From the NCBI GenBank assembly GCA_002269645.1, contig NIVC01000558.1, forward strand, positions 248,001 through 312,000: 64,000 nucleotides of DNA. Reading direction: 5' to 3'. This document shows positions 31,787-63,836 of this stretch, in pieces. Within the stretch, counting starts at the first letter, position 1. Each line of letters opens with the position of its first letter. A program made the position numbers and the translations under genes. Source of the DNA: Macrostomum lignano. Lineage: Eukaryota. Under the pieces are notes generated by a model that was given only the letters and a program-made list of their open reading frames with translations, searched no databases and was not told the origin of the DNA.

Positions 31787-34700
31787 TCAGGATGAGGCAC
31801 TCAGGAAGCTGTGCCGCAGCAGCTCCGCGGTGTCCGCTCGCTTCCTCGGGTCATAGTCTACGCACCTGAGGTAGAAGTCCTTCAGGCCGGCTGAGAACCC
31901 GTCCGCAATCCGAGGCATCTTCTGCTTTCTAAACCGCAGAATGCCAATATTTTCAATTGGCTGGTCTCCATCAGGAGGCTGCATGGCCGTCAGCTCATAC
32001 ACGGTGCAGCCGAAGGCCCACACGTCGGTCTTGGCTGAGTACAGAAGTGATTTCAATTTTGTGTCGAACAGCTCCGGAGCCATGAAGTACATGGTACCTT
32101 TTGGTCCGAAGCCTGTGCTAAGACCGCAGGTCTTCTCAATCTCCTTGGCCAGACCGAAGTCGATCAGCTTGATGACGCCCTCGTTGGTGAGCATAATATT
32201 GGAGCTCTTAATGTCACGGTGCAAGATAGCGCCCTCCGGCTGGCAGTGCAGAAAGTTCAGGCCTGAGCAGATCTGCAGGAGCAGTTTTGAGCAGTCATGA
32301 GACCCCATACCTGCTCCCACCCACACTGATCCCACACTAATCCCACACTGATCCCACACTGATCCCACACTGATCCCACACTGATCCCACACTGATCCCA
32401 CACTGATCCCACACTGATCCCACGCTGATCCCACACTGATCCCACACTAATCCCACATCCCACCCATGCCAGGCAATGCCAGAGAACTCAGAGACACACC
32501 TGTCTGGAGAAGTCCCTGACCCCGGACTCCTTGAACGGCTTTTTTTGACGCTGCATCAGCTCAAAGAGGCTGTGACCCGAGACCAGCTCGGTGAAGATGT
32601 ACAGCCCATCCGACTTCTGCTCGCACTTGAGGAACTGCAGGATGTTGGGATGCGAGAGTCGCTTGAGGATCTCAACTCCCCGCTTCTCCATCTCGACGGC
32701 TCTCTGCAGCTTCCCCGATTGGCCGGTGCCGCTCAGGGGCAGCACCTTGACAGCCACCGTCTGGTTGCGGTCTGTGAGGGCCTTGTACACCTTGCCGAAT
32801 CCACCACGGCCGATGAGCTGCTTCTTGTCGTCCTGCAGAATGAAGTCCCAGTCGGTGAAGCTGGGGTCCAGCTGCTTCTTGGCGCTGAAACATGAAATGA
32901 AGGAATTGATGAATTTTGTGTTGCTTGGGGCTTTCTGAGTACTTTGGAGTCACTCAGCCTTCTGCGTCACTACTCTTATGCGTCACCATCCTTATGCGTC
33001 ACCACCCTTCTGCGTCACCAGCCTTCTGCGTCAACCACCCTTCTGCGTCACCACCCTTCTGCGTCACCAACCTTCTGCGTCACCAGCCTTCTGCGTCACC
33101 ACCCTTCTGCGTCACCACCCTTCTGCGTCACCACCCTTCTGCGTCACCACCCTTCTGCGTCACCACCCTTCTGCGTCACCACCCTTCTGCGTCACCACCC
33201 TTCTGCGTCACCGCCCTTCTGCGTCACCACCCTTCTGCGTCACCACCCTTCTGCGTCACCGCCCTTCTGCGTCACCACCCTTCTGCGTCACCAGCCTTCT
33301 GCGTCACCAGCCTTCTGCGTCACCGCCCTTCTGCGTCACCACCCTTCTGCGTCACCACCCTTCTGCGTCACCACCCTTCTGCGTCACCACCCTTCTGCGT
33401 CACAACCCTTCTGCGTCACCACCCTTCTGCGTCACCACCCTTCTGCGTCACCACCCTTCTGCGTCACCACCCTTCTGTCATGAGCATCCTCGGGCGCCGT
33501 GAAGAGCCAGGTTCCTTTTGGCTGGTTGCCTGCGCTCAGACTGCAGGTTCTGATGAGTTCACTAACTGTCGCCTCATCATTTCTCACCGAGTCTTTTCAG
33601 GCAGTCCGACCGGAGTCGGCCCAGGCGGCTGGACGCTCTGTCGAGCTCGTGGGCGGGGACGCGGAGCTGCAGCGCTGTAGGAAGAGTTTTACGAGTGAGC
33701 CCGTTAAACATGTCTGGGTCGCCAACTCTGCTAATGCTTCGTGTATAAAAAGCCCTTGCAGATTGAGCTTTGGGTGGCGCTATATGGACATTGGGGGCGC
33801 GATCGGGAGATTGCGGCGCCACGAAGAGATTGGAGGCTCTCAAATCATTCAAGTGCCAATATTTTGAACATCACACCAAGTACATTCCTACTAAAATCGG
33901 AGAGTTTGAAACTTCGGAGAGTTTGATGGCACTTGCACTCGCTGATGCTTTGTGTTTAGAAACTGCAGATTGAGCTGTGGGTGGGGGTTGTGGGCCCATA
34001 GGGAGGTTGGAGGCGCCATGGGGAGATTGGAGACGCCGTTGGGAGGTTGGAGGCGCCATGAAGAGGTTTAAGGCGCCATGGGGAGGTTGGGGGCGCCATG
34101 GGGAGGTTGGAGGCGCCATGAGGAGGTTGGAGGCGCCATGGGGAGGTTGGGGGCGCCATGGGGAGGTTGGGGCACCATGGGGAGGTTGGAGGCGCCATGT
34201 AGAGGTTGGGGGCGCCATGAGGAGCTGTACTGACAGATTCATGACACCCTCGCTTGACTGCGGCGCTGCTGAGAATTTCAGGGCGCCGATCATCAAAGCA
34301 ATGAATTTCAATGAATTTTCGCCAAAAAACATTTTCAGAATTTTCAGTGTCAGGCAGCAGCTCTCAGTCAGGACTCACCCAGCTGAGGCGGCAGTCGGCG
34401 CTGAGCTGCCAGCGGGAGGCCGAGAGGCTTCGAGCTGCCGCTGCGTGGAGGAAATCCAGGCCCGCTTTGCTGACTCGTCTGTGAGGCACCGCCGACTCGC
34501 AACAACATCAGCCGGTGTTTCGCCCCTGTTGTTCTTCAAGCTGAGCATTTCGGCTCCGATTTGGTCAAAAATGAACTGAAGAGAGTCGACTGGCTGCCAC
34601 TGAGCGGCCAAATGGACGGCCGTGTTACCGTCTTTGCCAGGAACTGTGAGACAGTCGCTGCCGAGCTCCTTCACCAGCCACTTCAGATTTGAATTGTCAG

Positions 34701-36153
34701 ACTTCCCAGCAGCAATGTGAAATGCTGTTTTATCACATTCTCCCTTCAGCCGAAAGCAGTCAGTTCCGATCTGTCTCTTGATCCACTCCAGCGACTCGAT
34801 GCCCTGATACAGAGCGGCCAAATGGACGGCCGTGTCACCGTCTTTGTCAGGAACTGTGAGACAGTCGCTGCCGAGCTCCTTCACCAGCCACTTCAGATTT
34901 GAATTGTCAGACTTCTGAGCAGCAGAGTGAAATGCCGTTCTCTTCCAGAACCCTCCGTTTAGCCGAAAGCAGTCAGTTCCGATCTGTCTCTTGATCCACT
35001 CCAGCGACTCGATGCCCTGATGCTTAGCGGCCAAATGGATGGCCGTGTCACCGTCTTTGTCAGGAACTGTGAGACAGTCGCTGCCGAGCTCCTTCACCAG
35101 CCACTTCAGATTTGAATTGTCAGACTTCTTAGCAGCAATGTGAAATGCTGTTCTATCCCACCATCCCTTCAGCCGAAAGCAGTCAGTTCCGATCTGTCTC
35201 TTGATCCACTCCAGCGACTCGATGCCCTGATGCTCAGCGGCCAAATGGACGGCCGTGTCACCGAGTATGTCAGGAACTGTGAGACAGTCGCTGCCGAGCT
35301 CCTTCACCAGCCACTTCAGATTTGAATTGTCAGACTTCTCAGCAGCAAAGTGAAATGGTCTTCTATCACCATCTCCCTTCAGCCGAAAGCAGTCAGTTCC
35401 GATCTGTCTCTTGATCCACTCCAGCGACTCGATGCCCTGATGCTGAGCGGCCAAATGGACGGCCGTGTCACCGTCTTTGTCAGGAACTGTGAGACAGTCG
35501 CTGCCGAGCTCCTTCACCAGCCACTTCAGATTTGAATTGTCAGACTTCCCAGCAGCAATGTGAAATGCTGTTTTATCACATTTTCCCTTCAGCCGAAAGC
35601 AGTCAGTTCCGATCTGTCTCTTGATCCACTCCAGCGACTCGATGCCCTGATACAGAGCGGCCAAATGGACGGCCGTGTAACCGTCTTCGTCAGGAACTGT
35701 GAGACAGTCGCTGCCGAGCTCCTTCACCAGCCTCTTCAGACAAGAGTTGCTTTTTCTGTTCATAGCGGCAAAGTGAGCGACTGTCTGTTTCAATCTATCG
35801 ACAATTCTCAAGCAGCCTCTGCCTCCCTTCTCTTTAACCAGCTTCATCCAAGATTCGTCCTGATGCTGGGCAGCCAAGTGCACTGGAGTCTCGTCCCTAT
35901 CATTTCCAAGTGTCAGACAGTCGGGTCCGAATCTGTCAATCAGCAGCTCCAGGCACGACGAGCTCACCGGCTTGCAGGCCACGTGGTGGGCCAGCGGCAT
36001 TTTGCGAAGCTCTTCAAAGGGATAGTCTTGCTTGTCGAACCCGCCCACCTCCAGCTCGATGTTGCTGCCGACCTCACCGCACAGTCGCTGCAGCTGCTCG
36101 CTGTCTCCAGCCTCCAGCGCCGCTCTCAGCTTCCGCTCCATCTCCGTTGCCAT
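31787..36153 (-). CDS. Ankyrin-repeat / Ser-Thr protein kinase (STE/MAP3K-like), paralogue A, ~910 aa; exons 36153-34379, 33674-33588, 32884-32500, 32272-31787
   Basis: ATG in a gccATGg context with an in-frame stop upstream. GT-AG introns with matching phases (2, 2, 0); the total of 2733 nt equals 911 codons. Structure: N-cap, then 5 x 70-aa double-ankyrin units, then C-cap, a Pro/Arg linker exon and a kinase with [24 protein letters not shown] and DVWAFG intact. Confidence 0.9.
32315..34215. repeat. Intronic arrays of kinase gene A: 11-bp cccacactgat (32315-32455), 16-bp ttctgcgtcaccaccc (32955-33478), ~21-bp gggaggttggaggcgccatgg (33985-34215)
   Basis: Each intron carries its own array. 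Confidence 0.88.
34636..35688 (-). repeat. Coding 210-bp tandem repeat (two ankyrin repeats per unit), 5 units, paralogue A
   Basis: Unit consensus [70 protein letters not shown]; one unit is 71 aa. Confidence 0.95.
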
Positions 36154-38640: not shown

Positions 38641-39169
38641 GGCACCTCATCAATGGCGCTTTGTGCTCAAATGCAGTTTAGTTATATATTAGTTATTATA
38701 ATAATTTTGCATTTTGTACTCACGGTTTATTTTGCTAATCTTTATACACAGTTCAGGTGTGCATTTTGTAATCCAGCTTTGATAATCTTTGGATTTATTT
38801 ATCCGGTGCAACAGACTGACCCTGCTTCTACTCGCCCCGACCCTAGCCATCCAAGCAGCTCCAGACCAGCCGAGCTCAATGCCCAGAGGACAATGGCGAA
38901 GCTGAGGTTTAAGGGCCGAGCCGGCAGCCTGCGAACGCGTGTCAAAAGAAGGCTCGCTGCAAATGCTTTTTTAGGAGGGGGGAGGGGGTTGATGGCTGCC
39001 TAAAAGCGGCACAGAGACAAAATGCGTGAGCGCTAACCCTGACCCGCTCAGACAATTCACTGCTTTGCATTGCGCCTGTGCGCTCTCGGCTAAAATTTAC
39101 TACCTTTGATATTCGGCACTTCGGGTTTTCAGATGCGAGCCTCGCACTCATATTGGGCGTCTAGAATTA

Positions 39170-41915
39170 GGGTGAGGGGCAGGGAGGGAGACAGGCTGGG
39201 ATGTAGGGTGAGGAGCAGGGAGAGAGACAGGCTGGGATGTAGGGTGAGGGGCAGGGAGAGAAACAGGCTGGGATGTAGGGTGAGGAGCAGGGAGAGAGAC
39301 AGGCTGGGATGTAGGGTGAGGGGCAGGGAGAGAGACAGGCTGGGATGTAGGGTAAGGAGCAGGGAGAGAGACAGGCTGGGATGTAGGGTGAGGGGCAGGG
39401 AGAGAGACAGGCTGTGATGTAGGGTGAGGGGCAGGGAGAGAGACAGGCTGGGATGTAGGGTGAGGGGCAGGGAGAGAGACAGGCTGTGATGTAGGGTGAG
39501 GGGCAGTATGAGCGACAGGCTGGGATGTAGGGTGAGGGGCAGGGAGAGAGACAGGCTGGGATGTAGGGTGAGGGGCAGGGAGAGAGACAGGCTGGGATGT
39601 AGGGTGAGGGGCAGGGAGAGACAGGCTGGGATGTAGGGTGAGGGGCAGGGAGAGAGACAGGCTGTGATGTAGGGTGAGGGGCAGTATGAGCGACAGGCTG
39701 GGATGTAGGGTGAGGGGCAGAGAGGGAGACAGGCTGGGACGTAGGGTGAGGCGCGGGGAGATACAGGCTGGGATGTAGGGTGAGGGGCGGCGAGATACAG
39801 GCTGGGATCTAGGGTGAGGGGCAGGGAGAGAGACAGGCTAGGATGTAGGGTGAGGGGCAGGGAGAGAGACAGGCTGGGATGTAGGGTGAGGGGCAGGGAG
39901 AGACAGGCTGGGATGTAGGGTGAGGGGCAGGGAGAGAGACAGGCTGTGATGTAGGGTGAGGGGCAGTATGAGCGACAGGCTGGGATGTAGGGTGAGGGGC
40001 AGGGAGGGAGACAGGCTGGGATGTAGGGTGAGGCGCGGGGAGAGAAAGGCTGGGATGTAGGGTGAGGGGCGGGGAGATACAGGCTGGGATGTAGGGTGAG
40101 GGGCAGGGAGAGAGACCGGCTGGGATGTAGGGTGAGGGGCAGGGAGAGAGACAGGCTGGGATGCAGGGTGAGGGACAAGAAGAGATAGGCTGCGATGTAG
40201 GGTGAGGGGCAGGGAGGGAGACAGGCTGGGATGTAGGGTGAGGGGCAGGGAGAGAGACAGGCTGGGATGTAGGGTGAGGGGCAGGGAGAGAGACAGGCTG
40301 GGATGTAGGGTGAGGGGCAGGGAGGGAGAAAGGCTGGGATGTAAGGTGAGGGGCAGGGAGAGAGACAGGCTGGGATGTAGGGTGAGGGGCAGGGAGAGAG
40401 ACAGGCTAGGATGTAGGGTGAGGGGCAGGGAGAGAGACAGGCTGGGATGTAGGGTGAGGGGCGGGGAGATACAGGCTGGGATGTAGGGTGAGGGGCAGGG
40501 AGAGAGACAGGCTGTGATGTAGGGTGAGGGGCAGTATGAGCGACAGGCTGGGATGTAGGGTGAGGGGCAGGGAGGGAGACAGGCTGGGATGTAGGGTGAG
40601 GCGCGGGGAGATACAGGCTGGGATGTAGGGTGAGGGGCGGGGAGATACAGGCTGGGATGTAGGGTGAGGGGCAGGAAGAGAGACCGGCTGGGATGTAGGG
40701 TGAGGGGCAGGGAGAGAGACAGGCTGGGATGCAGGGTGAGGGACAAGAAGAGATAGGCTGGGATGCAGGGTGAGGGACAAGAAGAGATAGGCTGGGATGT
40801 AGGGTGAGGGGCAGGGAGGGAGACAGGCTGGGATGTAGGGTGAGGGGCAGGGAGAGAGACAGGCTGGGATGTAGGGTGAGGGGCAGGGAGAGAGACAGGC
40901 TGGGATGTAGGGTGAAGGGCAGGGAGAGAGACCGGCTGGGATGTAGGGTGAGGGGCAGGGAGAGAGACAGGCTGGGATGCAGGGTGAGGGACAAGAAGAG
41001 ATAGGCTGGGATGCAGGGTGAGGGACAAGAAGAGATAGGCTGGGATGTAGGGTGAGGGGCAGGGAGGGAGACAGGCTGGGATGTAGGGTGAGGGGCAGGG
41101 AGAGAGACAGGCTGGGATGTAGGGTGAGGGGCAGGGAGAGAGACAGGCTGGGATGTAGGGTGAGGGGCAGGGAGAGAGAAAGGCTGTGATGTAGGGTGAG
41201 GGGCAGTATGAGCGACAGGCTGGGATGTAGGGTGAGGGGCAGGGAGAGACAGGCTGGGATGTAGGGTGAGGCGCGGGGAGATACAGGCTGGGATGTAGGG
41301 TGAGGGGCGGGGAGATACAGGCTGGGATGTAGGGTGAGGGGCAGGGAGAGAGACAGGCTGGGATGTAGGGTGAGGGGCAGGGAGGGAGAAAGGCTGGGAT
41401 GTAGGGTGAGGGGCAGGGAGAGAGACAGGCTGGGATGTAGGGTGAGGGGCAGGGAGAGAGACAGGCTGGGATGTAGGGTGAGGGACAAGAAGAGATAGGC
41501 TGGGATGTAGGGTGAGAGGCAGGGAGGGAGACAGGCTGGGATGTAGGGTGAGAGGCAGGGAGAGAGACAGGCTGGGATGCAGGGTGAGGGACAAGAAGAG
41601 ATAGGCTGGGATGCAGGGTGAAGGACAAGAAGAGATAGGCTCGGATGTAGGGTGAGGGGCAGGGAGGGAGAAAGGCTGGGATGTAGGGTGAGGGGCAGGG
41701 AGAGAGACAGGCTGGGATGTAGGGTGAGGGGCAGGGAGAGAGACAGGCTGGGATGTAGGGTGAGGGGCAGGGAGAGAGACAGGCTGGGATGTAGGGTGAG
41801 GGACAAGAAGAGATAGGCTGGGATGTAGGGTGAGAGGCAGGGAGGGAGACAGGCTGGGATTTAGGGTGAGGGGCAGGGAGAGAGACAGGCTGGGATTTAG
41901 GGTGAGAGGCAGGGC
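39170..41915. repeat. 36-bp G-rich minisatellite (ggctgggatgtagggtgaggggcagggagagagaca)n, ~76 copies
   Basis: Directly visible; the long minus-strand ORFs (934, 596 and 466 aa) are artefacts of it. The same unit occurs at 50588-51303. Confidence 0.95.
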
Positions 41916-42468: not shown

Positions 42469-43216
42469 CAGCTTGTGTTGTGTTGCGCACCTGTAAGAAT
42501 TCAATTTTATTGCACATTCGAGTCCGCCTCTCCATCGGTTTCATTGTCCCGCATTTGGCTTGTAAAAAACTGGCTTCTCAAGCAGCTGATTGCATTTTAT
42601 AACAAATGCTCGCTCAGCTCGAGTTTTGTTTAGCTGCGAGCTTGAGCAGTCCTGCTCACAGGGCTCTCTTCGCCAGCTACATGAGCACGCATATCAACTG
42701 ACAGAATTCAGCAATCCACCCTCGCTTTGGCCCACTGATGTTCCACACTTCTTTATATTTTTGCCTCCAAGAAGTCCAAAAGCAACAGCCAATCAGATTT
42801 TGCTTTCGATGCGCAGATTTTTAGTGGCGATAAAAGTGAAAATTGAATACTGATTTCTTATTTCGAAAACGTTGGACTAACCTTAGAAAATGAGAAACAG
42901 TCCATCACAGGCGCGTGTGGTTGGTGCTGACTCACACAGCCATCCTTCAGGTAGCTGACTGCTCACACAGCCAGTGCAATTACATGTACATTATTTATCC
43001 GGTGCAACACACTGACTCAGCAGTTCAGCATTAATAATCTAGTTTTTCACCTGCATTGCTCAAATAAAAGTATTGCTGTTTCAATGTTTCTGTCAGATCA
43101 CCAATGGATGACAATGCAGAGCAGCACATGTAAAGTATGTGCATTTGAGCATAAAGTTCTCGGCTGGTGTTTGTCTTTGCTATTTTGTTCGTGGTTTGGA
43201 ATCTCAGATTCGTGCT

Positions 43217-45830
43217 CATGTGCCATGACTAATATCTCATGCACACAGCCATTTCTCATGTGCAATGACCCATATCTCATGCACACAGCCATTGCTCATG
43301 TGCAATGACCCATATCTCATGCACACAGCCATTGCTCATGTGCCATGACCCATATCTCATGCACACAGCCATTGCTCATGTGCAATGACCCATATCTCAT
43401 GCACACAGCCATTGCTCATGTGCCATGACCCATATCTCATGCACACAGCCATTGCTCATGTGCCATGACCCATATCTCATGCACACAGCCATTGCTCATG
43501 TGCCATGACACATATCTCATGCACACAGCCATTGCTCATGTGCCATGACCCATATCTCATGCACACAGCCATTGCTCATGTGCCATAACTAATATCTCAT
43601 GCACACAGCCATTGCTCATGTGCTATGACTAATATCTCATGCACACAGCCATTGCTCATGTGCAATGACCCATATCTCATGCACACAGCCATTGCTCATG
43701 TGCAATGACCCATATCTCATGCATACAGCCATTGCTCATGTGCTATGACCCATATCTCATGCACACAGCCATTGCTCATGTGCAATGACCCATATCTCAT
43801 GCACACAGCCATTGCTCATGTGCCATGACCCATATCTCATGCACACAGCCATTGCTCATGTGCAATGACCCATATCTCATGCACACAGCCATTGCTCATG
43901 TGCAATGACACATATCTCATGCACACAGCCATTGCTCATGTGCAATGACCCATATCTCATGCACACAGCCATTGCTCATGTGCCATGACTAATATCTCAT
44001 GCACACAGCCATTGCTCATGTGCTATGACCCATATCTCATGCACACAGCCATTGCTCATGTGCAATGACCCATATCTCATGCACACAGCCATTGCTCATG
44101 TGCAATGACTAATATCTCATGCACACAGCCATTGCTCATGTGCTATGACCCATATCTCATGCACACAGCCATTGCTCATGTGCTATGACCCATATCTCAT
44201 GCACACAGCCATTGCTCATGTGCAATGACCCATATCTCATGCACACAGCCATTGCTCATGTGCCATGACCCATATCTCATGCACACAGCCATTGCTCATG
44301 TGCAATGACCCATATCTCATGCACACAGCCATTGCTCATGTGCCATGACCCATATCTCATGCACACAGCCATTGCTCATGTGCAATGATCCACATCTCAT
44401 GCACACAGCCATTGCTCATGTGCCATGACCCATATCTCATGCACACAGCCATTGCTCATGTGCAATGATCCACATCTCATGCACACAGCCATTGCTCATG
44501 TGCCATGACCCATATCTCATGCACACAGCCATTGCTCATGTGCTATGACCCATATCTCATGCACACAGCCATTGCTCATGTGCAATGACCCATATCTCAT
44601 GCACACAGCCATTGCTCATGTGCCATGACCCATATCTCATGCACACAGCCATTGCTCATGTGCAATGACCCATATCTCATGCACACAGCCATTGCTCATG
44701 TGCCATGACCCATATCTCATGCACACAGCCATTGCTCATGTGCCATGACCCATATCTCATGCACACAGCCATTGCTCATGTGCTATGACCCATATCTCAT
44801 GCACACAGCCATTGCTCATGTGCCATGACCCATATCTCATGCACACAGCCATTGCTCATGTGCTATGACCCATATCTCATGCACACAGCCATTGCTCATG
44901 TGCCATGACCCATATCTCATGCACACAGCCATTGCTCATGTGCCATAACTAATATCTCATGCACACAGCCATTGCTCATGTGCCATGACCCATATCTCAT
45001 GCACACAGCCATTGCTCATGTGCCATGACCCATATCTCATGCACACAGCCATTGCTCATGTGCTATGACCCATATCTCATGCACACAGCCATTGCTCATG
45101 TGCCATGACCCATATCTCATGCACACAGCCATTGCTCATGTGCCATGACCCATATCTCATGCACACAGCCATTGCTCATGTGCTATGACCCATATCTCAT
45201 GCACACAGCCATTGCTCATGTGCCATGACCCATATCTCATGCACACAGTCATTGCTCATGTGCCATGACCCATATCTCATGCACACAGCCATTGCTCATG
45301 TGCAATGATCCACATCTCATGCACACAGCCATTGCTCATGTGCCATAACTAATATCTCATGCACACAGCCATTGCTCATGTGCCATGACCCATATCTCAT
45401 GCACACAGCCATTGCTCATGTGCCATAACTAATATCTCATGCACACAGCCATTGCTCATGTGCAATGATCCACATCTCATGCACACAGCCATTGCTCATG
45501 TGCCATAACTAATATCTCATGCACACAGCCATTGCTCATGTGCCATAACTAATATCTCATGCACACAGCCATTGCTCATGTGCCATAACTAATATCTCAT
45601 GCACACAGCCATTGCTCATGTGCCATGACCCATATCTCATGCACACAGCCATTGCTCATGTGCCATGACCCATATCTCATGCACACAGCCATTGCTCATG
45701 TGCCATGACACATATCTCATGCACACAGCCATTGCTCATGTGCCATGACCCATATCTGATGCACACAGCCATTGCTCATGTGCCATGACCCATATCTCAT
45801 GCACACAGCCATTGCTCATGTGCCATGACC
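43217..45830. repeat. 40-bp minisatellite (catatctcatgcacacagccattgctcatgtgccatgacc)n, ~65 copies
   Basis: The 120-nt phase is visible across lines. Confidence 0.97.
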
Positions 45831-46132: not shown

Positions 46133-47240
46133 AGACTCAAAAAACGCTTGTTTTCTCCTGTTTCGAGAAAGCTAAAAAAGCTAAAAGTGCAGCTGGCCGC
46201 CAGCTCAGCCAGCGGGGGGGGGCAGGCAGGGTGCTCAAGCACAATGCAGACTCTCCATTGTGCGAGGCTGGGGCTGCAACTCATTCGGGAGCAGCCGCCA
46301 CTGCAGCCTCAGACAGCTCAGGTTTGCGCTGCTCATCTCAGCAGCCTCATCGCTAATTGAATCTCCAACCTTCATCGTTAGCGGCCCCACCCAGCTCAGC
46401 ACTCGCAGTGCGACAGTCTGGCGTGATAAAAGCAGCCGGCAAAGAGAAAACTGCTCGAGTTCGCAATCACCCCATACTGGCCTCCCGAACCACCCAACCC
46501 CCCCGCAACCCCTGCCTGAGACAATAAGCAAGTCCAGCTACAATGCAACTCCACCCAGCTCACTGCTCAAAACAGAGACCGAGCGCTGCACTGCTGGTTG
46601 CCCCCCAGAGTCTGCCAAACTGCAGGGAGGCTGGCAGAGCGGTGCGTGGCCTGAGAATAGCGAGCGAGCAGAGATAATTGCTGCTTGAGGTTGAGCTGGC
46701 CTCTCTAACCACCCGCTCTCTACGGCTCAAGACTGCGTTTTGTCATAAATAAGGCATTGTTGCCATGCTCGAATCTCAGAATTTGATGGCTCTCAGGCCA
46801 TTCAGTGCGGCTCAAAGCCTGTCTGTTGCTGCTGGCTGCAGGTGGCAGGAGTGCAAAATGCAGTGAGTTGCTGCGGCCGAGAGCTGGACAGAATTGAGAT
46901 GGGCTGCCAGAGCTCAGCTGCACTTTAATAATAAACAACTGATGAAGCCCGAGACTGCAATTGAGGGGCTGAGCAGCTGCCTCTTGCGAAAAGTTATACA
47001 TGTACTGTGGTTCGATTCTGTGCGATTGGCCTGAGGTGATTCCCAGCCCAGCCATGAAGGCCAACTTCTTAGGCACTCTGGTACAATGGGTTGGTTTTTA
47101 ATGGAGCTGAACCAATATCAACTAAAATCACTGTACTAATCAGCATACCTGTACACTATGCAGACAATGCGATAGAATTTCAAGGATTGCTTTTTGGACT
47201 TCTGCTGGGTCACAGATTCATGGGAAATCAGTAGTTTCCA
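46130..47240. mobile_element. Partial second copy of the 6541-8281 TIR element (internal region plus right TIR)
   Basis: Colinear similarity to ~7150-8240 (for example gggctgcaactcattcgggagcagccgccactgcagcctcagacagctcagg). Confidence 0.75.
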
Positions 47241-48975
47241 GGGCATATCAGTAGTCTTCACAAGATGCGTGGGCCCACAGGTAAGCAAATTCAGCAGGTA
47301 TCGAGTAGGCTGAGCAATGGCTGGAGTTGCGATCATGCGCTTCCGGCTGGTTGCAGTGATGAGCAATGGTACAGTAGAAAATATTTTAAACTCTGTTGCT
47401 TGCTCCATTTTCAGCAGGGCTTATTGATCCTCGCTGCTCTCCGTGCCTGCTTATCTACACAACCGAGCTTCAAACTCGGTGACCGCGTGCCTGCCCAGAG
47501 CTGAGCAAAACTATTTGAGCGGGAAAAGTGAGCAACAACTGCATCGGTCCCTGCACACCAGTGCCTCACCTCCAGTCAGCCGGGTTTGCCATCCCAACAG
47601 ACTGCACTCAAAACAGGGCGGCTCACACCTCAGGCCCGTGCACTGGTCCCTCCTACCGGGGTACCGGGTGCCTGTGCCGCCTACGGCCCCTCGGTCTCTC
47701 CTCCAGCCTTCTGTCACTAGCGGACACAAAAGTTGCAGCCAACAAGGGGGTCGCACCCACCTTCCTGCCGCTGCCGTGACGCGAACTTGAGTCGAGTTCC
47801 AACATTCGGATAGCAGAGTGGCGTTCCATGGTCGCCGCAGTGCTGCTCCGTCTGCCGCCTCCTCACCTCGAGGTGGCTTTTCCCAAGGGCGAACGGATTC
47901 CGCCCCCAAGAGCCGTGGTGTCGGGTTGCTGACGCCTGCGGGGGTACTCTCAAAGGGGTAGCCATGGTCTTACGCTTGACCAGCATGCTTGACTCCCCTA
48001 AGAGCTGGCATGCTTCGCCTTCTAAGGTGACTGTCTAACACTAGCAAGCAACTTTAATTAAGCAAACAGTTTTTAACTTTACTCTTTTTTGTTTATTTAC
48101 TGAATTTTTCTGAATAGAGCAGTTTTAATGCCATCAGTCGGTGCACATGGCTGGATTTGGTAGGCCTTTTTGCCTTAATTTTAGCGGACAGCACCTGGGA
48201 TCAAGTCAACAGGTCGTTTGCTGTGTCACATGACAAGGCTGATTCCTATAGCCGAGCCACAACGTCTCAAACATCTGGTTCTGTTGACGCCAGCACCCTA
48301 CTAGCCCTGCGTGATGCTGTCTAGTCCGCTCTCTCACACTGTATGACTGCCTCGCAGACATCGCAGTCCAGAGTTTTCATCGTGGACTCCGTCTGACGAG
48401 GCAACCAGACAGCGGTTGAAACTGACATCGCCTGCATGTGCACCGGTCTGTCTACATAAGTCAATATTTTACAATTTTTATTTAAACTAATGAATACAGT
48501 AATCGATAAATTTTACTGCAACTCAGCCTCTGCCGCATGTCATCCTCCAGCTCTTGTCTTTTGCCGCTCATGTCCTCTTGGTTGGAAAAACTGGTGTTTT
48601 CTAAGAAATGCTTGTCCAGACTCCGGAAAGTCAGGCAACCAGCATGTATAGGCGGTTTTCGTGGGTCGGAATGGGCGGTGATCGTTGCACCTCCTTTTAC
48701 TTTCAGTATGTGCAGACCAAGTCTTATAACTGCAATGGCTCCATTGTTCGGGCGCAAGTTGAAAGTTTCTCTTCTTTTCCGCGCTCATATTTGTGCTCAG
48801 TCGCATTATTCGAAACCTGCACAATAGCAAGAGGGTTAGAGAACTAAGCAATAGCAACTACTTGAGTGAAAAAATGAACGCCTGTACGCCAGTTCCACGT
48901 GAACACGGCTAGATCAGACCTGGCCGTTGTGCATCATCGTTGATGCTGCTGCTGATGGTTGTGTGAGTCGAGCTA

Positions 48976-50587: not shown

Positions 50588-51303
50588 AAGAGACAGGCTG
50601 GGATGAAGGGTGAGGGGCAGGGAGAGAGACAGGCTGGGATGAAGGGTGAGGGGCAGGGAGGGAGACAGGCTGGGATGTAGGGTGAGGGGCAGGGAGGGAG
50701 ACAGGCTGGGATGTAGGGTGAGGGGCAGGGAGAGAGACAAGCTGGGATGTAGGGTGAGGGACAGTATGAGAGACAGGCTGGGATGTAGGGTGAGGGACAG
50801 GGAGAGAGACAGGCTGGGATGTAGGGTGAGGGGGCGGGGAGATACAGGCTGGGATGTAGGGTGAGGGGCAGGGAGAGAGACAGGCTGGGATGTAGGGTGA
50901 GGGGCAGGGAGAGAGACAGGCTGGGATGTAGGGTGAGGGACAGTATGAGAGACAGGCTGGGATGTAGGGTGAGGGACAGTATGAGAGACAGGCTGGGATG
51001 TAGGGTGAGGGGCGGGGAGATACAGGCTGGGATGTAGGGTGAGGGGCAGGGAGAGAGACAGGCTGGGATGTAGGGTGAGGGGCAGGGAGAGAGACAGGCT
51101 CGGATGTAGGGTGAGGGGCGGGGAGATAGACAGGCTGGGATGTAGGGTGAGGGGCAGGGAGGGAGACAGGCTGGGATGTAGGGTGAGGGGCAGGGAGAGA
51201 GACAGGCTGGGATGTAGGGTGAGGGGCAGGAAGGGAGACAGGCTGGGATGTAGGGTGAGGGGCAGGGAGAGAGACAGGCTGGGATGCAGGGTGAGGGACA
51301 GGG
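50588..51303. repeat. Second array of the 36-bp G-rich unit, ~20 copies
   Basis: Same unit as 39170-41915; the right flanks share aatctccgcaaacaatatcgcttaca. Confidence 0.92.
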
Positions 51304-51991: not shown

Positions 51992-54900
51992 ACTGAGTTG
52001 GTTAAACTGTGCTCAGTAAGCCTGAGTTGGTTAAACTGTGCTCAGTGAGCCTGAGTTGGTTAAACTGTGCTCAGTAAGCGTGAGTTGGTTAAACTGTGCT
52101 CAGTAAGCCTGAGTTGGTTAAACTGTGCTCAGTAAGCGTGAGTTGGTTAAACTGTGCTCAGTAAGCCTGAGTTGGTTAAACTGTGCTCAGTAAGCCTGAG
52201 TTGGTTAAACTGTGCTCAGTAAGCCTGAGTTGGTTAAACTGTGCTCAGTAAGCCTGAGTTGGTTAAACTGTGCTCAGTAAGCGTGAGTTGGTTAAACTGT
52301 GCTCACAGGTTGTAATTCTGAGTTGGTATCGATTTTTAATCAGAATGGAATCTGGAGACTGTGCAGCATGTGAGGCGATTCTGCGAATATGAGATCATGA
52401 GGTCCATGTTTATTGTTTATTTACTTGGATGCCTTTGATTAATTTATAACAAATCGTTCGTTTAGCATTTAGGCATTGATTTAGGTCATAGACAATTGCG
52501 GTCATACCCAGTAGGTCATAGACAATTGCGGTCATGCTCAGTAGGTCATAGACAATTGCGGTCATACCCAGTAGGTCATAGACAATTGCGGTCATGCTCA
52601 GTAGGTCATAGACAATTGCGGTCCTACCCAGTAGGTCATAGACAATTGCGGTCATGCTCAGTAGGTCATAGACAATTGGGTCATGCTCAGTAGGTCATAG
52701 ACAATTGCGGTCATGCTCAGTAGGTCATAGACAATTGCGGTCATACCCAGTAGGTCATAGGCAATTGCGGTCATGCTCAATAGGTCATAGACAATTGCGG
52801 TCATGCTCAGTAGGTCATAGACAATTGCGGTCATACCCAGTAGGTCATAGACAATTGCGGTCATGCTCAGTAGGTCATAGACAATTGGGTCATGCTCAGT
52901 AGGTCATAGACAATTGCGGTCATGCTCAGTAGGTCATAGCCAATTGCGGTCATACCCAGTAGGTCATAGGCAATTGCGGTCATGCTCAATAGGTCATAGA
53001 CAATTGCGGTCATGCTCAGTAGGTCATAGACAATTGCGGTCATACCCAGTAGGTCATAGACAATTGCGGTCATGCTCAGTAGGTCATAGACAATTGCGGT
53101 CATACCCAGTAGGTCATAGACAATTGCGGTCATGCTCAGTAGGTCATAGACAATTGCGGTCATACCCAGTAGGTCATAGACAATTGCGGTCATGCTCAGT
53201 AGGTCATAGACAATTGGGTCATGCTCAGTAGGTCATAGACAATTGCGGTCATGCTCAGTAGGTCATAGACAATTGCGGTCATACCCAGTAGGTCATAGGC
53301 AATTGCGGTCATGCTCAATAGGTCATAGACAATTGCGGTCATGCTCAGTAGGTCATAGACAATTGCGGTCATACCCAGTAGGTCATAGACAATTGCGGTC
53401 ATGCTCAGTAGGTCATAGACAATTGGGTCATGCTCAATAGGTCATAGACAATTGCGGTCATGCTCAGTAGGTCATAGACAATTGCGGTCATGCTCAGTAG
53501 GTCATAGACAATTGCGGTCATACCCAGTAGGTCATAGACAATTGCGGTCATGCTCAGTAGGTCATAGACAATTGCGGTCATGCTCAGTAGGTCATAGACA
53601 ATTGCGGTCATACCCAGTAGGTCATAGGCAATTGCGGTCATGCTCAGTAGGTCATAGACAATTGCGGTCATGCTCAGTAGGTCATAGACAATTGCGGTCA
53701 TACCCAGTAGGTCATAGACAATTGCGGTCATACCCAGTAGGTCATAGACAATTGCGGTCATACCCAGTAGGTCATAGACAATTGCGGTCATGCTCAGTAG
53801 GTCATAGACAATTGCGGTCATACCCAGTAGGTCATAGGCAATTGCGGTCATGCTCAGTAGGTCATAGACAATTGCGGTCATGCTCAGTAGGTCATAGACA
53901 ATTGCGGTCATACCCAGTAGGTCATAGGCAATTGCGGTCATGCTCAGTAGGTCATAGACAATTGCGGTCATGCTCAGTAGGTCATAGACAATTGCGGTCA
54001 TACTCAGTAGGCCATAGACAATTGGGTCATGCTCAATAGGTCATAGACAATTGGGTCATGCTCAGTAGGTCATAGACAATTGGGTCATGCTCAGTAGGTC
54101 ATAGACAATTGGGTCATGCTCAGTAGGTCATAGACAATTGGGTCATGCTCAGTAGGTCATAGACAATTGGGTCATGCTCAGTAGGTCATAGACAATTGCG
54201 GTCATGCTCAGTAGGTCATAGACAATTGCGGTCATACCCAGTAGGTCATAGACAATTGCGGTCATGCTCAGTAGGTCATAGACAATTGCGGTCATACTCA
54301 GTAGGTCATAGACAATTGCGGTCATGCTCAGTAGGTCATAGACAATTGCGGTCATACCCAGTAGGTCATAGACAATTGCGGTCATGCTCAGTAGGTCATA
54401 GGCAATTGCGGTCATGCTCAGTAGATCATAGACAATTGCGGTCATGCTCAGTAGATCATAGACAATTGCGGTCATGCTCAGTAGGTCATAGGCAATTGCG
54501 GTCATGCTCAGTAGGTCATAGACAATTGCGGTCATGCTCAGTAGGTCATAGACAATTGCGGTCATGCTCAGTAGGTCATAGACAATTGCGGTCATGCACA
54601 GTAGGTCATAGACAATTGCGGTCATGCTCAGTAGGTCATAGACAATTGCGGTCATGCTCAGTGGGTCATAGACAATTAGGGTCATACTCAGTACATGTAG
54701 ATCATAGACAATCATGATCACAACTCGTACATGTAGGGTAGCTGTGAAGAATCGGTCATAAACAGTAAATGAATTCAACGATCAAAATTAACAATAGCAT
54801 GAAACCTACGACCCCCTTTTACCTTCTATTCTACGCCCTTTCCCCTGATCTTACCCTCACCACAATCTCACCCGAGTTTCACCAGAATCTCACAAAGATG

Positions 54901-57814: not shown

Positions 57815-60800
57815 TCACGATGAGGCACTCAGGAAGCTGTGCCGCAGCAGCTCCGCGGTGTCCGCTCGCTTCCTCGGGTCATAGTCTACGCACCTGAGGT
57901 AGAAGTCCTTCAGGCCGGCTGAGAACCCGTCCGCAATCCGAGGCATCGCCCGCCCTCCGCACCTCAGCACGGCGATCCGGAAGTGCTGAACGTTCGCGTC
58001 AGGAGGCTGCATGGCCGTCAGCTCATACACGGTGCAGCCGAAGGCCCACACGTCGGTCTTGGCTGAGTACGGAATCGAATCGCCCTCGCCCATGAACAGC
58101 TCGGGCGCCATGAAGTAGGGGGTGCCTTTGGGATCAACGCCTGTGCTCAGGCCGCAGGTGCCGACAATCTCCTTGGCGAGGCCGAAGTCGATCAGCTTGA
58201 TGACGCCCTCGTTGGTGAGCATCACATTGGAGCTCTTGATGTCACGGTGCAAAATGGCGCCCTCCGGCTGGCAGTGCAGGAAGTTCAGGCCTGAGCAGAT
58301 CTGCAGGTCGAGCAGTTTTGGGTACTCAAAAAGTGCATGAATTCATTTTAAATCCCACCCTGATGCCACACTGATCCCACACTGACCCCACACTGATACC
58401 ACACTGATCTCACACTGATCCCACACTGATCCCACACTGATCCCACACTGATCCCACAATGATCCCACACTGATCCCACACTGATCCCACACTGATCCCA
58501 CAATGATCCCACACTGATCCCACACTGATCCCACACTGATCCCACACTAATCCCACACTGATTCCACCCTGATTCCACCCTGATCCCACCCTTACCAGAA
58601 AATTAATATGCCAGAGAACTCAGAGACGCACCTGTCTGGAGAAGTCCCTGACCCCGGACTCCTTGAACGGCTTGTTCTGACGCTGCATCAGCTCAAAGAG
58701 GCTGTGACCCGAGACCAGCTCGGTGAAGATGTACAGCCCGTCCGACTTCTGCTCGCACTTGAGGAACTGCAGAATGTTGGGATGCGAGAGTCGCTTGAGG
58801 ATCTCAACTCCCCGCTTCTCCATCTCGACGGCTTTCTGCAGCTTCCTCGATTGGCCGGTGCCGCTCAGGGGCAGCACCTTGACAGCCACCGTCTGGTTGC
58901 GGTCTGTGAGGGCCTTGTACACCTCACCGAATCCGCCACGGCCGATGAGCTGCTTCTTGTTGTCCTGCAGGATGAAGTCCCAGTCGGTAAAGCTGGGGTC
59001 CAGCTGCTTCTTGGCGCTGAAACATGAAATGAAGGAATTGATGAATTTTGTGTTGCTTGGAGCTTTCTGAGTACTTTGGAGTCACTCAGCCTTCTGCGTC
59101 ACCACCCTTCTGCGTCACCACCCTTCTGCGTCACCACCCTTCTGCGTCACCACCCTTCTGCGTCACCACCCTTCTGCGTCAACACCCTTCTGCGTCACCA
59201 GCCTTCTGCGTCACCAGCCTTCTGCGTCACCAGCCTTCTGCGTCACCAGCCTTCTGCGTCACCAGCCTTCTGCGTCACCAGCCTTCTGCGTCACCAGCCT
59301 TCTGCGTCACCAGCCTTCTGCGTCACTAGCCTTCTGCGTCACCAGCCTTCTGCGTCACCAGCCTTCTGCGTCACCAGCCTTCTGCGTCACCACCCTTCTG
59401 CGTCACCACCCTTCTGCGTCACCAGCCTTCTGCGTCACCACCCTTCTGCGTCACCATCCCTCTGCCATGAGCATCCTCGGGCGCCGTGAAGAGCCAGGTG
59501 CCTTTTGGCTGGTTGCCTGCGCTCAGACTGCAGGTTCTGATGAGTTCACTAACTGTCGCCTCATCATTTCTCACCGTGTCTCCTCAGGCAGTCCGACCGG
59601 AGTCGGCCCAGGCGGCTGGACGCTCTGTCGAGCTCGTGGGCGGGGACGCGGAGCTGCAGCGCTGTAGGAAGAGTTTTACGAGTGAGCCGTTAAACATGTC
59701 TGGGTCGCCAAGGCGGCACTTGAACTCTGCTAATGCTTCGTGTATAAGAAGCCCTGCAGATTGGGCTTTGGTGGCGCTATATGGACATTGGGGATGCGAT
59801 CGGGAGATTGCGGCGCCACGAAGAGATTTTGAACATATTATATTTAACATATTACATATTACAACATATTACATATTATATTATATTTTGAACATCACAC
59901 CAAGTACATTCCTACTAAAATCGGAGAGTTTGAAACTTCGGAGAGTTTGATGGCACTTGAACTCGCTGATGCTTTGTGTTAAAAAACTCCTGCAGATTGA
60001 GCTGTGGGTGGGGGTTGTGGGCCCATGGGGAGGTTGGAGGCACCATGGGGAGGTTAGAGGCGCCATGGGGAGGTTGGAGGCGCCATGGGGAGATTGGAGA
60101 CGCCATTGGGAGGTTGGAGGCGCCAAAGGGAGATTGGAGACACCATGGGGAGATTGGAGACGCCATTGGGAGGTTGGAGGCGCCACAGTAAGATTGGAGG
60201 CGCCATGGGGAGATTAGGGGCGCCATGAGGAGCTGCGCTGACAGATTCATGCCGCCATCGCTTGGCTGCGGCGCTGCTGAGAATATCAGGGCGCAGATCA
60301 TCAAAGCGCAATGAATTTTCTACAATGAATATTCTCAGTATTTTCACCTTCAGGCAGCAGTTCTCAGTCAGGACTCACCCAGATGAGGCGGCAGTCGGCG
60401 CTGAGCTGCCAGCGGGAGGCCGAGAGGCTTTGAGCCGCAGATGCGTGGAGGAAATCCAGGCCCGCTTTGCTGACTTGTCTGCGTCCCGCCGCGGACTCTC
60501 AACAACATCAGCCAGTGTTTTCCCCATGATGTTCTTCAAGCTGAACATTTCGGCTCCGATTTGGTTAAAAATGAACTGAAGAGAGCCGACTGGCTGATGC
60601 TGAGCGGCCAAATGGACGGCCGTGTCACCGCCTTCGTCAGGAACTGTGAGACAGTCGCTGCCGAGCTCCTTCACCAGCCACTTCAGATTTGAATTGTCAG
60701 ACTTCTCAGCAGCAAAGTGAAATGCCGTTTTATCCAACCATCCCTTCAGCCGAAAGCAGTCAGTTCCGATCTGTCCCTTGATCCACTCCAGCGACTCGAT

Positions 60801-63800
60801 GCCCTGATGCTGAGCGGCCAAATGGACGGCCGTGTCACCTCTAGAGTCAGGAACTGTGAGACAGTCGCTGCCGAGCTCCTTCACCAGCCACTTCAGATTT
60901 GAATTGTCAGACTTCCGAGCAGCAATGTGAAATGCCGTTTTATCCAACCATCTCTTCAGCCGAAAGCAGTCAGCTCCGATCTGTCTCTTGATCCACTCCA
61001 GCGACTCGATGCCCTGATGCTCAGCGGCCAAATGGACGGCCGTGTCACCGAGTATGTCAGGAACTGTGAGACAGTCGCTGCCGAGCTCCTTCACCAGCCA
61101 CTTCAGATTTGAATTGTCAGACTTCTCAGCAGCAATGTGAAATGCTGTTCTATCATCATCTCTCTTCAGCCGAAAGCAGTCAGTTCCGATCTGTCTCTTG
61201 ATCCACTCCAGCGACTCGATGCCCTGATGCTGAGCGGCCAAATGGACGGCCGTGGTACCGTATTTGTCAGGAACTGTGAGACAGTCGCTGCCGAGCTCCT
61301 TCACCAGCCACTTCAGCTTTGAATGGTCAGACTTCTTAGCAGCAATGTGAAATGCTGTTCTCTCACCATCTCCCTTCAGCTGAAAGCAGTCAGTTCCGAT
61401 CTGTCCCTTGATCCACTCCAGCGACTCGATGCCCTGATGCTGAGCGGCCAAATGGACGGCCGTGTCACCTCTAGAGTCAGGAACTGTGAGACAGTCGCTG
61501 CCGAGCTCCTTCACCAGCCACTTCAGCATTGAATTGTCAGACTTCTCAGCAGCAAAGTGAAATGCTGTTCTATCCCAGCATCCTCCCTTCAGCCGAAAGC
61601 AGTCAGTTCCGATCTGTCTCTTGATCGACTCCAGCGACTCGATGCCCTGATGCTGAGCGGCCAAATGGACGGCCGTGGTACCGTATTTGTCAGGAACTGT
61701 GAGACAGTCGCTGCCGAGCTCCTTCACCAGCCACTTCAGATTTGAATTGTCAGACTTCTCAGCAGCAATGTGAAATGCTGTTTTATCCCACCGTCCCTTC
61801 AGCCGAAAGCAGTCAGTTCCGATCTGTCCCTTGATCCACTCCAGCGACTCGATGCCCTGATGCTGAGCCGCCAAATGGACGGCCGTGTCACCGACTTTGT
61901 CAGGAACTGTGAGACAGTCGCTGCCGAGCTCCTTCACCAGCCACTTCAGATTTGAATTGTCAGACTTCTTAGCAGCAAAGTGAAATGCTGTTCTATCATC
62001 ATCTCCCTTCAGCTGAAAGCAGTCAGTTCCGATCTGTCCCTTGATCCACTCCAGCGACTCGATGCCCTGATGCTGAGCGGCCAAATGGACGGCCGTGTCA
62101 CCTCTAGAGTCAGGAACTGTGAGACAGTCGCTGCCGAGCTCCTTCACCAGCCACTTCAGATTTGAATTGTCAGACTTCTCAGCAGCAATGTGAAATGCTG
62201 TTCTATCCAACAATCCCTTCAGCCGAAAGCAGTCAGTTCCGATCTGTCTCTTGATCCACTCCAGCGACTCGATGCCCTGAAGCCAAGCAGCCAAATGGAC
62301 GGCCGTGTAACCGTCTTTGTCAGGAACTGTGAGACAGTCGCTGCCGAGCTCCTTCACCAGCCACTTCAGATTTGAATTGTCAGACTTCTCAGCAGCAAAG
62401 TGAAATGCCGTTTTATCCAACCATCCCTTCAGCCGAAAGCAGTCAGCTCCGATCTGTCTCTTGATCCACTCCAGCGACTCGATGCCCTGATGCTCAGCGG
62501 CCAAATGGACGGCCGTGTCACCGAGTATGTCAGGAACTGTGAGACAGTCGCTGCCGAGCTCCTTCACCAGCCACTTCAGATTTGAATTGTCAGACTTCTT
62601 AGCAGCAAAGTGAAATGCTGTTCTATCCAATAATCCCTTCAGCCGAAAGCAGTCAGTTCCGATCTGTCCCTTGATCCACTCCAGCGACTCGATGCCCTGA
62701 TGCTGAGCGGCCAAATGGACGGCCGTGGTACCGTATTTGTCAGGAACTGTGAGACAGTCGCTGCCGAGCTCCTTCACCAGCCACTTCAGATTTGAATTGT
62801 CAGACTTCTTAGCAGCAAAGTGAAATGCTGTTCTATCATCATCTCCCTTCAGCTGAAAGCAGTCAGTTCCGATCTGTCCCTTGATCCACTCCAGCGACTC
62901 GATGCCCTGATGCTGAGCGGCCAAATGGACGGCCGTGTCACCTCTAGAGTCAGGAACTGTGAGACAGTCGCTGCCGAGCTCCTTCACCAGCCACTTCAGA
63001 TTTGAATTGTCAGACTTCTTAGCAGCAAAGTGAAATGCTGTTCTATCATCATCTCCCTTCAGCCGAAAGCAGTCAGTTCCGATCTGTCTCTTGATCCACT
63101 CCAGCGACTCGATGCCCTGATGCTCAGCGGCCAAATGGACGGCCGTGTTACCGCATTTGTCAGGAACTGTGAGACAGTCGCTGCCGAGCTCCTTCACCAG
63201 CCACTTCAGATTTGAATTGTCAGACTTCCGAGCAGCAAAGTGAAATGCCGTTCTCTTCCAGAACCCTCCGTTCAGCCGAAAGCAGTCAGTTCCGATCTGT
63301 CTCTTGATCCACTCCAGCGACTCGATGCCCTGATGCTGAGCGGCCAAATGGACGGCCGTGTCACCGACTTTGTCAGGAACTGTGAGACAGTCGCTGCCGA
63401 GCTCCTTCACCAGCCTCTTCAGACAAGAGTTGCTTTTTCTGTTCATAGCGGCAAAGTGAGCGACTGTCTGTTTCAATCTATCGACAATTCTCAAGCAGCC
63501 TCTGCCTCCCTTCTCTTTAACCAGCTTCATCCAAGATTCGTCCTGATGCTGGGCAGCCAAGTGCACTGGAGTCTCGTCCCTATCATTTCCAAGTGTCAGA
63601 CAGTCGGGTCCGAATCTGTCAATCAGCAGCTCCAGGCACGACGAGCTCACCGGCTTGCAGGCCACGTGGTGGGCCAGCGGCATTTTGCGAAGCTCTTCAA
63701 AGGGATAGTCTTGCTTGTCGAACCCGCCCACCTCCAGCTCGATGTTGCTGCCGACCTCACCGCACAGTCGCTGCAGCTGCTCGCTGTCTCCAGCCTCCAG

Positions 63801-63836
63801 CGCCGCTCTCAGCTTCCGCTCCATCTCCGTTGCCAT
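57815..63836 (-). CDS. Ankyrin-repeat / Ser-Thr protein kinase (STE/MAP3K-like), paralogue B, ~1471 aa; exons 63836-60379, 59661-59575, 59016-58632, 58300-57815
   Basis: Same splice sites and phases as paralogue A; 4416 nt equals 1472 codons. 13 double-ankyrin units. Kinase motifs [30 protein letters not shown] and DVWAFG are intact. Confidence 0.9.
60636..63371 (-). repeat. Coding 210-bp tandem repeat (two ankyrin repeats per unit), 13 units, paralogue B
   Basis: Near-identical units with hypervariable codon patches; two units are 71 aa. Confidence 0.95.

Follow-up and report, generated by a model that had tools for sequence, protein, structure and literature searches.

Mosaic kinase domains in two tandem ankyrin-repeat kinase genes of Macrostomum lignano: anciently diverged docking-face tracts in a near-identical framework

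Two tandem ankyrin-kinase genes

We analysed a 64,000-nt stretch of the Macrostomum lignano contig NIVC01000558.1 (assembly GCA_002269645.1), here called the window, within which all positions are given. It carries two tandem genes, designated A and B, which encode protein kinases with ankyrin repeats and whose kinase domains differ almost only in a few sharply bounded tracts. The window is about 50% G+C and rich in minisatellites. Comparing the window with itself revealed a duplicated unit whose two copies (28.1-36.4 kb versus 52.0-64.0 kb) lie about 26 kb apart. Each copy of the unit holds a single minus-strand gene, with GT-AG introns of canonical form and reading frames that stay open throughout. 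The products of 881 (A) and 1442 (B) amino acids (aa) share one architecture, in which a hypervariable N-terminal ankyrin-repeat array is followed by an intact ASK1/STE-like kinase domain. The M. lignano protein BOX15_Mlig009647g1, which is encoded on the same contig, matches the C-terminal product of gene A with 100% identity.

All features of the two genes lie on the minus strand. Exon 1 of gene A (34379..36153), delimited by its open reading frame and splice donor, contains the start codon, the N-terminal ankyrin region and a series of 70-aa (210-bp) double-ankyrin units, recognized by the Pfam Ank families and by Tandem Repeats Finder (TRF) at a period of 210; the TRF array spans 34600-35740. 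According to the gene models, exon 2 (32500..32884) encodes the kinase N-lobe with its Gly-rich loop, VAVK motif and αC helix, and exon 3 (31787..32272) encodes the C-lobe and the stop codon. Gene B has the same N-terminus in its exon 1 (60379..63836), but its ankyrin array (60594-63423) is longer and matches the anchor motif of the unit 13 times, versus 5 in A. The N-lobe follows in exon 2 (58632..59016) and the C-lobe with the stop codon in exon 3 (57815..58300). Intron 1 of gene A harbors an optional 87-nt exon 1b (33588..33674), whose counterpart in gene B was located by sequence match (59575..59661). Exon 1b preserves the frame and adds a Pro/Arg-rich linker; the NCBI model of gene A (P0001) includes it, but most other models of the family skip it.

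The gene A product matched the Pfam kinase profile PF00069 over residues 612-877 (Pkinase, E 8.5e-56), and the AlphaFold model showed a confident kinase fold with a mean predicted local distance difference test score (pLDDT) of 85.7. Judged by the profile, the fold and the motifs (Gly-rich loop, VAIK Lys, HRD, DFG, APE and αF Asp), the domain has the features of a catalytically competent eukaryotic protein kinase. A and B do not differ in any catalytic motif, DVWAFG included, and all of these motifs are intact. The best sequence matches in the PDB were STK25, SLK, MST3/4 and ASK1 (E ~1e-34 to 1e-33, ~30% identity). The nearest solved fold was the ASK1 kinase domain, with a template modelling (TM) score of 0.89-0.91, followed by TNIK, MST3, TAO3 and STK10, while the best database matches outside the genus were plant STE11 MAP3Ks with 36-38% identity. 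By these pairwise sequence and fold matches, the closest relatives of the two kinases appear to be STE-group, ASK1/MST-like enzymes, of either the STE11 or the STE20 subfamily. A first-pass annotation of this DNA, made from the letters alone, had raised the idea of a decoy kinase. A dead-kinase or pseudokinase decoy is unsupported, as no catalytic motif has been lost in A, in B or in the close paralogues.

Divergence between the two kinase domains

The kinase domains of A and B differ at 32 amino acids, and 26 of these differences fall within 41 of the 289 codons, arranged in three blocks. The same 41 codons hold 62 of the 86 nucleotide differences. Of the 385 nt of exon 2, 12 differ (5 aa); of the 486 nt of exon 3, 74 differ, clustered in the three blocks. 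Not a single difference occurs across the 70 nt that separate blocks 2 and 3, and the ~127 nt 3' of block 3 are identical save for one silent change in the last codon. Nucleotide divergence in the blocks (62/123, 50%) was compared with that in the remaining kinase coding sequence (24/747, 3.2%; Fisher p ~2e-40) and in the unique non-coding DNA of the duplicated unit (92/2657, 3.5%; Fisher p ~1e-49). The divergence of the blocks was therefore neither mostly synonymous nor limited to that of the introns. The first-pass annotation had described near-identical N-lobes and catalytic motifs with dense replacements in three segments, and this description was confirmed: all six peptides that it listed were found exactly, on the minus strand, and the ranges that it gave for the two genes (57940-58180 and ~31915-32145) span their variable tracts.

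Silent changes unite blocks 1 and 2 into one tract of ~113 nt, which runs from just after DFG into the αEF-αF loop, whereas block 3 forms a separate tract of ~54 nt. In the A/B alignment, tract 1 occupies 32041..32153 in gene A and 58069..58181 in gene B, and extends through the activation loop, the P+1 loop and APE to the αEF-αF loop. Tract 2, located by the alignment and by structural placement, occupies 31917..31970 in gene A and 57945..57998 in gene B and comprises the αF-αG loop and the αG helix. The tracts of gene A are of a type that we call T1 and those of gene B of a type T2, as described below for the family. Structural placement relied on alignment to STK25 and on the AlphaFold model, which assign block 1 to the activation loop and P+1 loop, block 2 to the αEF-αF loop, and block 3 to the αF-αG loop and αG helix. 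Together with the literature, this placement upholds the proposal that the divergent segments form a recognized protein-docking face. The lengths of the blocks are exactly conserved, and structural residues within them are retained (TCGLSTG, PKG and the I..LR pattern of αG). An assembly artefact was rejected, since both versions recur in protein models of another assembly (A type in P0007, P0011 and P0014; B type in P0024).

Silent sites and the age of the tracts

Silent and replacement divergence between A and B, the only pair compared in this way, was estimated by the Nei-Gojobori method as the proportions of differing silent (pS) and replacement (pN) sites and the corrected values dS and dN. 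In the blocks, pS was 0.60 and pN 0.47, which corresponds to a saturated dS of ~1.2 and a dN/dS of ~0.6. Elsewhere in the kinase pS was 0.10, and this framework outside the blocks gave a dS of 0.11 and a dN of 0.011. For block 3 alone, pN (0.57) and pS (0.63) are both near saturation, and their ratio is uninformative for selection of the type known from the kinase PKR. Among codons that specify the same residue in both genes, a silent change was present in 12 of 31 within the variable zones versus 12 of 218 elsewhere (p=1.6e-6), a result independent of how codons with multiple hits are counted. Divergence therefore shifts abruptly at the tract boundaries, at silent sites as well as at replacement sites.

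The tracts also differ in base composition. G+C at third codon positions (GC3) is 0.49 in the A tracts, which are AT-shifted, versus 0.80 in the B tracts and 0.83-0.86 in the framework. At differing positions, B has G or C where A has A or T in 37 cases, and the reverse holds in 9. This suggests that the T1 version was long outside a GC-rich, frequently exchanged pool, or came from a compositionally different source. The rest of the duplicated unit is itself uneven. The first 413 nt of exon 1, together with 164 nt of shared upstream sequence, show no difference between A and B (0/577), while divergence rises to 10-14% around the boundary of exon 1 with intron 1 and within intron 2; in the remainder of the unit it is 1-4%. 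Non-coding divergence is ~3.5% overall but patchy (0-14%), with significant heterogeneity among segments (chi-square p=1.6e-13).

The first-pass annotation had implied, by the dN/dS test that it proposed, that replacements accumulated in these loops by ordinary positive selection on point substitutions after the A/B duplication. The replacements are indeed dense in functionally meaningful loops. However, the silent sites of the same tracts are saturated, as the unchanged codons also indicate, and the DNA beside the tracts is identical over 70-127 nt. A tract divergence of 50-63% flanked by identity, with introns at ~3%, did not arise by point substitution since the duplication. We rejected post-duplication positive selection on this account and find the explanation scarcely credible; the loops are not replacement hot spots dating from the duplication. 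Adenine-directed mutagenesis in the style of diversity-generating retroelements (DGR) was rejected by eye, as the differences involve all four bases. On the sequence comparison, we take the tracts to be old sequence set into a framework that is young or homogenised, and not places where adaptive substitution has recently been fast. The comparison shows the kinase C-lobe of A and B to be a mosaic, in which two tracts that are anciently diverged, as judged from their silent sites, lie in a near-identical framework.

The ankyrin array

The exon 1 product matched the Pfam families Ank_2, Ank_4 and Ank (E 1e-31 to 6e-45), and the arrays consist of the tandem 70-aa double units, which are 92-95% identical to one another. 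Codon variation was examined in 14 units, taken from both A and B. Each unit has six hypervariable codons (pN 0.49, pS 0.24; pN/pS ~2), whereas the other codons are nearly invariant (pN 0.03, pS 0.02). The hypervariable codons flank the G-x-TA-x-H hairpin and directly follow the AA motif. These six positions we take to be the canonical binding positions on the concave face of ankyrin repeats, those randomised in designed ankyrin proteins; by this assignment the array is a recognition domain with its variation concentrated at binding positions. The earlier suggestion that the sensor is diversifying was therefore well founded.

Cassette types among the paralogues

About 30 related M. lignano proteins were found, and the family was compared through 14 distinct close paralogues, represented by draft protein models. 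The same three blocks are hypervariable across these paralogues, with a column entropy of 0.81 versus 0.26 outside (p=5e-9). The blocks fall into discrete types, which we call cassettes. Gene A has T1, gene B shares T2 with at least eight other paralogues, and T3 is found in P0002 and P0008; T1-like variants are also present among the paralogues. Within the T2 subset, variable columns made up 14/35 in the blocks and 56/205 in the framework (p=0.16). Variability in the T2 blocks does not significantly exceed that of the framework, and each cassette is therefore under constraint. We read the cassettes, from these protein alignments, as alternative stable versions rather than as products of continuous hypermutation.

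The constraint bears on a neutral explanation, in which the least-constrained loops simply drifted, mismatch rejection halted gene conversion at their edges and the surrounding framework became homogenised, with no selection on specificity. This would accommodate the block dN/dS below 1, the general tendency of αG and the activation loop to be the least conserved elements of kinases, and the AT shift of the A tracts, which is expected after long escape from GC-biased conversion. Drift does not, however, account for block lengths kept exactly and structural residues retained, and blocks as conserved as the framework within a cassette type indicate purifying selection instead. We consider the neutral explanation distinctly unlikely.

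Some paralogues combine cassettes of different types. In the draft protein models, the activation loop of P0013 is T1-like but its post-APE loop is T2, and P0003 has T2 loops together with an αG whose start is T3-like. When the variant of the N-lobe β3-αC region was set against the activation cassette, all four combinations were found, in P0002, P0008, P0013 and P0022. This β3-αC loop is a fourth variable zone (kinase residues 52-64; ~32695-32733 in gene A), with alternatives in P0008 and P0022; A and B are nearly identical there.

Larger modules also appear in different company. In P0123, P0124 and P0126, a near-identical ankyrin tail and linker are joined to a much more divergent kinase clade, which suggests shuffling between subfamilies at the level of exons or modules. 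GFG replaces DFG in P0126. Paralogue C (BOX15_Mlig010227g1, P0121; locus L002, 9754-13177, contig NIVC01000369.1) is an ankyrin-only gene from which the kinase is deleted, and was the single further NCBI-annotated relative reached by way of the ankyrin region. What remains is the ankyrin exon with ~160 nt of intron 1, ~15 nt from the end of exon 3, and the 3' flank; ~470 nt of unrelated DNA stands in place of the whole kinase. Many of the draft models (P0004-P0010, P0016) end at one point within block 3 (...RIAVL/RIGVL). In B-type DNA this endpoint reads CTGAG|GTGCGG and resembles a splice donor; it may reflect the behavior of gene prediction or a real alternative 3' end.

These modular combinations bear on whether the kinase face co-evolved with the ankyrin array of its own protein, which would dock on the C-lobe to autoinhibit the kinase, so that each cassette matches its own array. 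The array and the kinase face both differ between A and B, and regulators are known to dock on αG in other kinases. However, near-identical ankyrin tails occur with quite different kinases (P0123/P0126 versus P0003/P0004), the number of units is very different between B and A (13 versus 5 anchor-motif matches), and an ankyrin-only copy exists; each of these points speaks for separable modules. We regard such co-evolution as very improbable.

The family data also bear on an arms race, in which a pathogen or parasite antagonist binds the variable face, or the face is a guarded target or decoy, and old cassettes are kept by balancing selection. The hypervariable ankyrin binding positions and the varying copy number are typical of recognition receptors, the deep discrete cassette lineages resemble long-lived immune alleles, and the family is lineage-specific and expanded. 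In addition, αG is a known battleground in PKR (PMC9683710). On the other side, dN/dS in the blocks does not exceed 1; the catalytic residues are all intact, so the kinases are no dead decoys; and T2 is nearly unchanged in at least nine paralogues, unlike a fast-moving race. An arms race seems to us rather unlikely.

A cassette fragment in intron 1

Intron 1 of both genes contains a copy of the T3 activation-segment cassette, ~80 nt long and ~40 nt downstream of exon 1b (33470..33548 in gene A and 59457..59535 in gene B, minus strand). The two copies show a few base differences over the ~80 nt. The fragment matched the T3 cassette of P0002 and P0008 at 18 of 20 residues (tblastn, E 4e-14), and after a +1 frameshift six more codons follow, reading MLM(T/A)EG, like the unusual APE-MLMGEG continuation of P0002. 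Its homology starts abruptly at the variable part, without the conserved DFGLAKE flank, and ends at a 16-bp minisatellite; comparison by eye found no kinase homology upstream of it (11/30 nt). A search of the non-coding DNA of the window with 18 block peptides returned only this T3 copy as significant.

The T3 copy in the intron means that patches of tract length do get copied to new places. The fragment itself could be what is left of a patch-copying event, or it could act as a silent donor. In the latter case one could envisage a cassette-donor system, in which silent tract-sized copies such as this one are pasted into exon 3 at a high rate, in the germ line or somatically. If true, such a system would couple a hypervariable ankyrin sensor to kinase modules interchangeable per paralogue or per cell, an immune-receptor-like strategy undescribed for protein kinases or flatworms. 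We give it little credence.

Other features of the window

A long terminal repeat (LTR) retrotransposon lies at 19799-24088 on the plus strand, with one gag-pol-type open reading frame of 1257 aa containing protease, reverse transcriptase, RNase H and integrase domains. An identity of 99.5% between its 182-bp LTRs makes the insertion look recent. Between A and B, a called minus-strand gene extends from ~37426 to beyond 44508, and the source annotation gives its product a match to Pfam Hormone_5 (neurophysin-type hormone precursor). Very long minisatellite arrays, with periods of 36, 40, 30 and 56 nt, occur at 39168-41914, 50589-51303, 43213-45830, 52482-54693 and 25208-26954. A 36-nt G-rich array is found on both sides of the region between the genes, and the introns and flanks of A and B carry matching minisatellite arrays that differ in copy number. 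A pair of inverted repeats at 6541-6939 and 7883-8281 (95% identity) flanks ~1 kb, with related copies 39 kb away at 46218-47248, and is probably a dispersed repeat or a transposon remnant.

Discussion

The explanation that we favor, with a probability of roughly 0.6 as a whole, is that short-tract gene conversion acted together with selection preserving alternative versions of a docking face. A and B are tandem members of a Macrostomum-specific family that joins an ankyrin array to a STE-group kinase. Their shared framework either stems from a recent duplication or has been kept uniform by gene conversion. Among the paralogues, conversion or recombination over short tracts may move the cassettes or homogenise the DNA around them, and selection would keep the alternative cassettes distinct.

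Published structures suggest what the two tracts may do. In STE-group and some other kinases the activation segment, from DFG to the αEF/αF loop, can be exchanged between protomers and docks in the αF/αG cleft of the partner during autophosphorylation (PMC2239268), and αG serves as a docking site for substrate and antagonist in PKR (PMC9683710). The tracts map to the exchanged segment and to its receiving cleft, and would therefore represent two halves of one docking face. The half formed by tract 1 would be the activation segment, offered to a partner kinase in trans-autophosphorylation and also lining the P+1/substrate groove; the half formed by tract 2 would be the αF/αG cleft that receives an activation segment or a protein substrate. 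Alternative cassettes could give each paralogue its own partner specificity, whether for the activating kinase domain, for the docked substrate, or for both. Cross-talk between receptors that carry different ankyrin arrays would then be avoided, or their signals would go to different outputs. We hold the mosaic or cassette process, read from the sequences, to be highly probable, and see partner specificity as the selected function, argued by analogy with other kinases, as about an even bet.

Several points weigh against this explanation. The DNA-level comparison of the kinases covers two copies, A and B, and the sharing and reshuffling seen in other paralogues come from protein models of a fragmented assembly, some of them truncated or mis-spliced. 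The three C-lobe blocks by themselves display three of the four possible combinations, which a tree without recombination could explain. No DNA donor was found for the T1 tracts of gene A. Recent duplication followed by import of a cassette is inseparable from old paralogues with a homogenised framework. Because of saturation, dN/dS in the blocks is uninformative on past positive selection. Finally, kinase activity, dimerisation, substrates and ligands of A and B are all inferred.

Among known systems, PKR (EIF2AK2), including the duplicated PKRs of bats (PMC9683710), has diversified at αG under pressure from viral pseudosubstrates. It resembles A and B in being an active kinase that varies at αG and the adjoining C-lobe surface, and in having duplicated copies that are unlike each other there. 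In PKR, however, the variation consists of scattered single residues with dN/dS above 1, whereas in A and B whole tracts of 50-110 nt differ and their silent sites are saturated. The sensor of PKR consists of double-stranded RNA-binding domains, while that of A and B is an ankyrin array. SLK, LOK/STK10 and ASK1, the closest relatives of the A and B kinases, exchange activation segments or form αG dimers (PMC2239268, PMC13232308). The exchanged segment and the receiving cleft of these kinases correspond by position to variable tracts 1 and 2. They are, however, single-copy, conserved and without N-terminal ankyrin arrays, whereas the A/B family is cassette-variable and its dimerisation would hold by analogy only.

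Patchwork conversion or microconversion is familiar from the genes of the major histocompatibility complex (MHC) and the killer-cell immunoglobulin-like receptors (KIR), from resistance (R) gene clusters of plants, and from the pseudo-V donors of chicken immunoglobulin genes. As in A and B, a conserved framework there holds short, deeply diverged motifs with high silent divergence inside them; the motifs are shared and recombined among paralogues, as the draft protein models suggest for the cassettes. Those systems target extracellular binding domains, whereas the target in A and B is the catalytic domain of a presumably cytoplasmic kinase. Tandem kinase-fold genes with polymorphism on a host-pathogen interaction surface are known from the ROP5/ROP18 loci of Toxoplasma and from the Pto-type and tandem-kinase resistance proteins of plants. 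These are secreted effectors or resistance components, many of them pseudokinases, while A and B are catalytically intact, presumably cytoplasmic and ankyrin-bearing.

Ankyrin repeats and a kinase domain also occur in one polypeptide in ILK, TNNI3K, RIPK4/ANKK1 and DAPK1, and ILK and TNNI3K, with N-terminal ankyrin repeats, share the domain order of A and B. All of these are conserved single genes of the TKL or CAMK groups with 4-10 fixed repeats. The A/B family differs from them in its STE-like kinase, in the variable number of near-identical 70-aa units, and in its hypervariable binding positions. A literature search for a description of this ankyrin-kinase family found nothing specific. Diversifying kinase surfaces and conversion mosaics are each already known; their combination, with the activation segment and αG replaced in cassette-like fashion in active animal kinases that bear hypervariable ankyrin arrays, appears to be new.

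The catalytic domains of kinases are normally among the most conserved protein modules. In the A/B family the activation segment and αG appear to behave as exchangeable cassettes, whereas surfaces of the PKR type diversify by scattered substitutions. In such families, dN/dS scans will give misleading results when recombination tracts are not set apart beforehand. Should the cassettes determine partner specificity, the paralogues would amount to a natural experiment on the mutual insulation of paralogous kinases, and would supply ready-made swaps for examining the general role proposed for αG in trans-autophosphorylation. In that case the family would also be a candidate for a lineage-specific family of recognition or immune receptors in Macrostomum.

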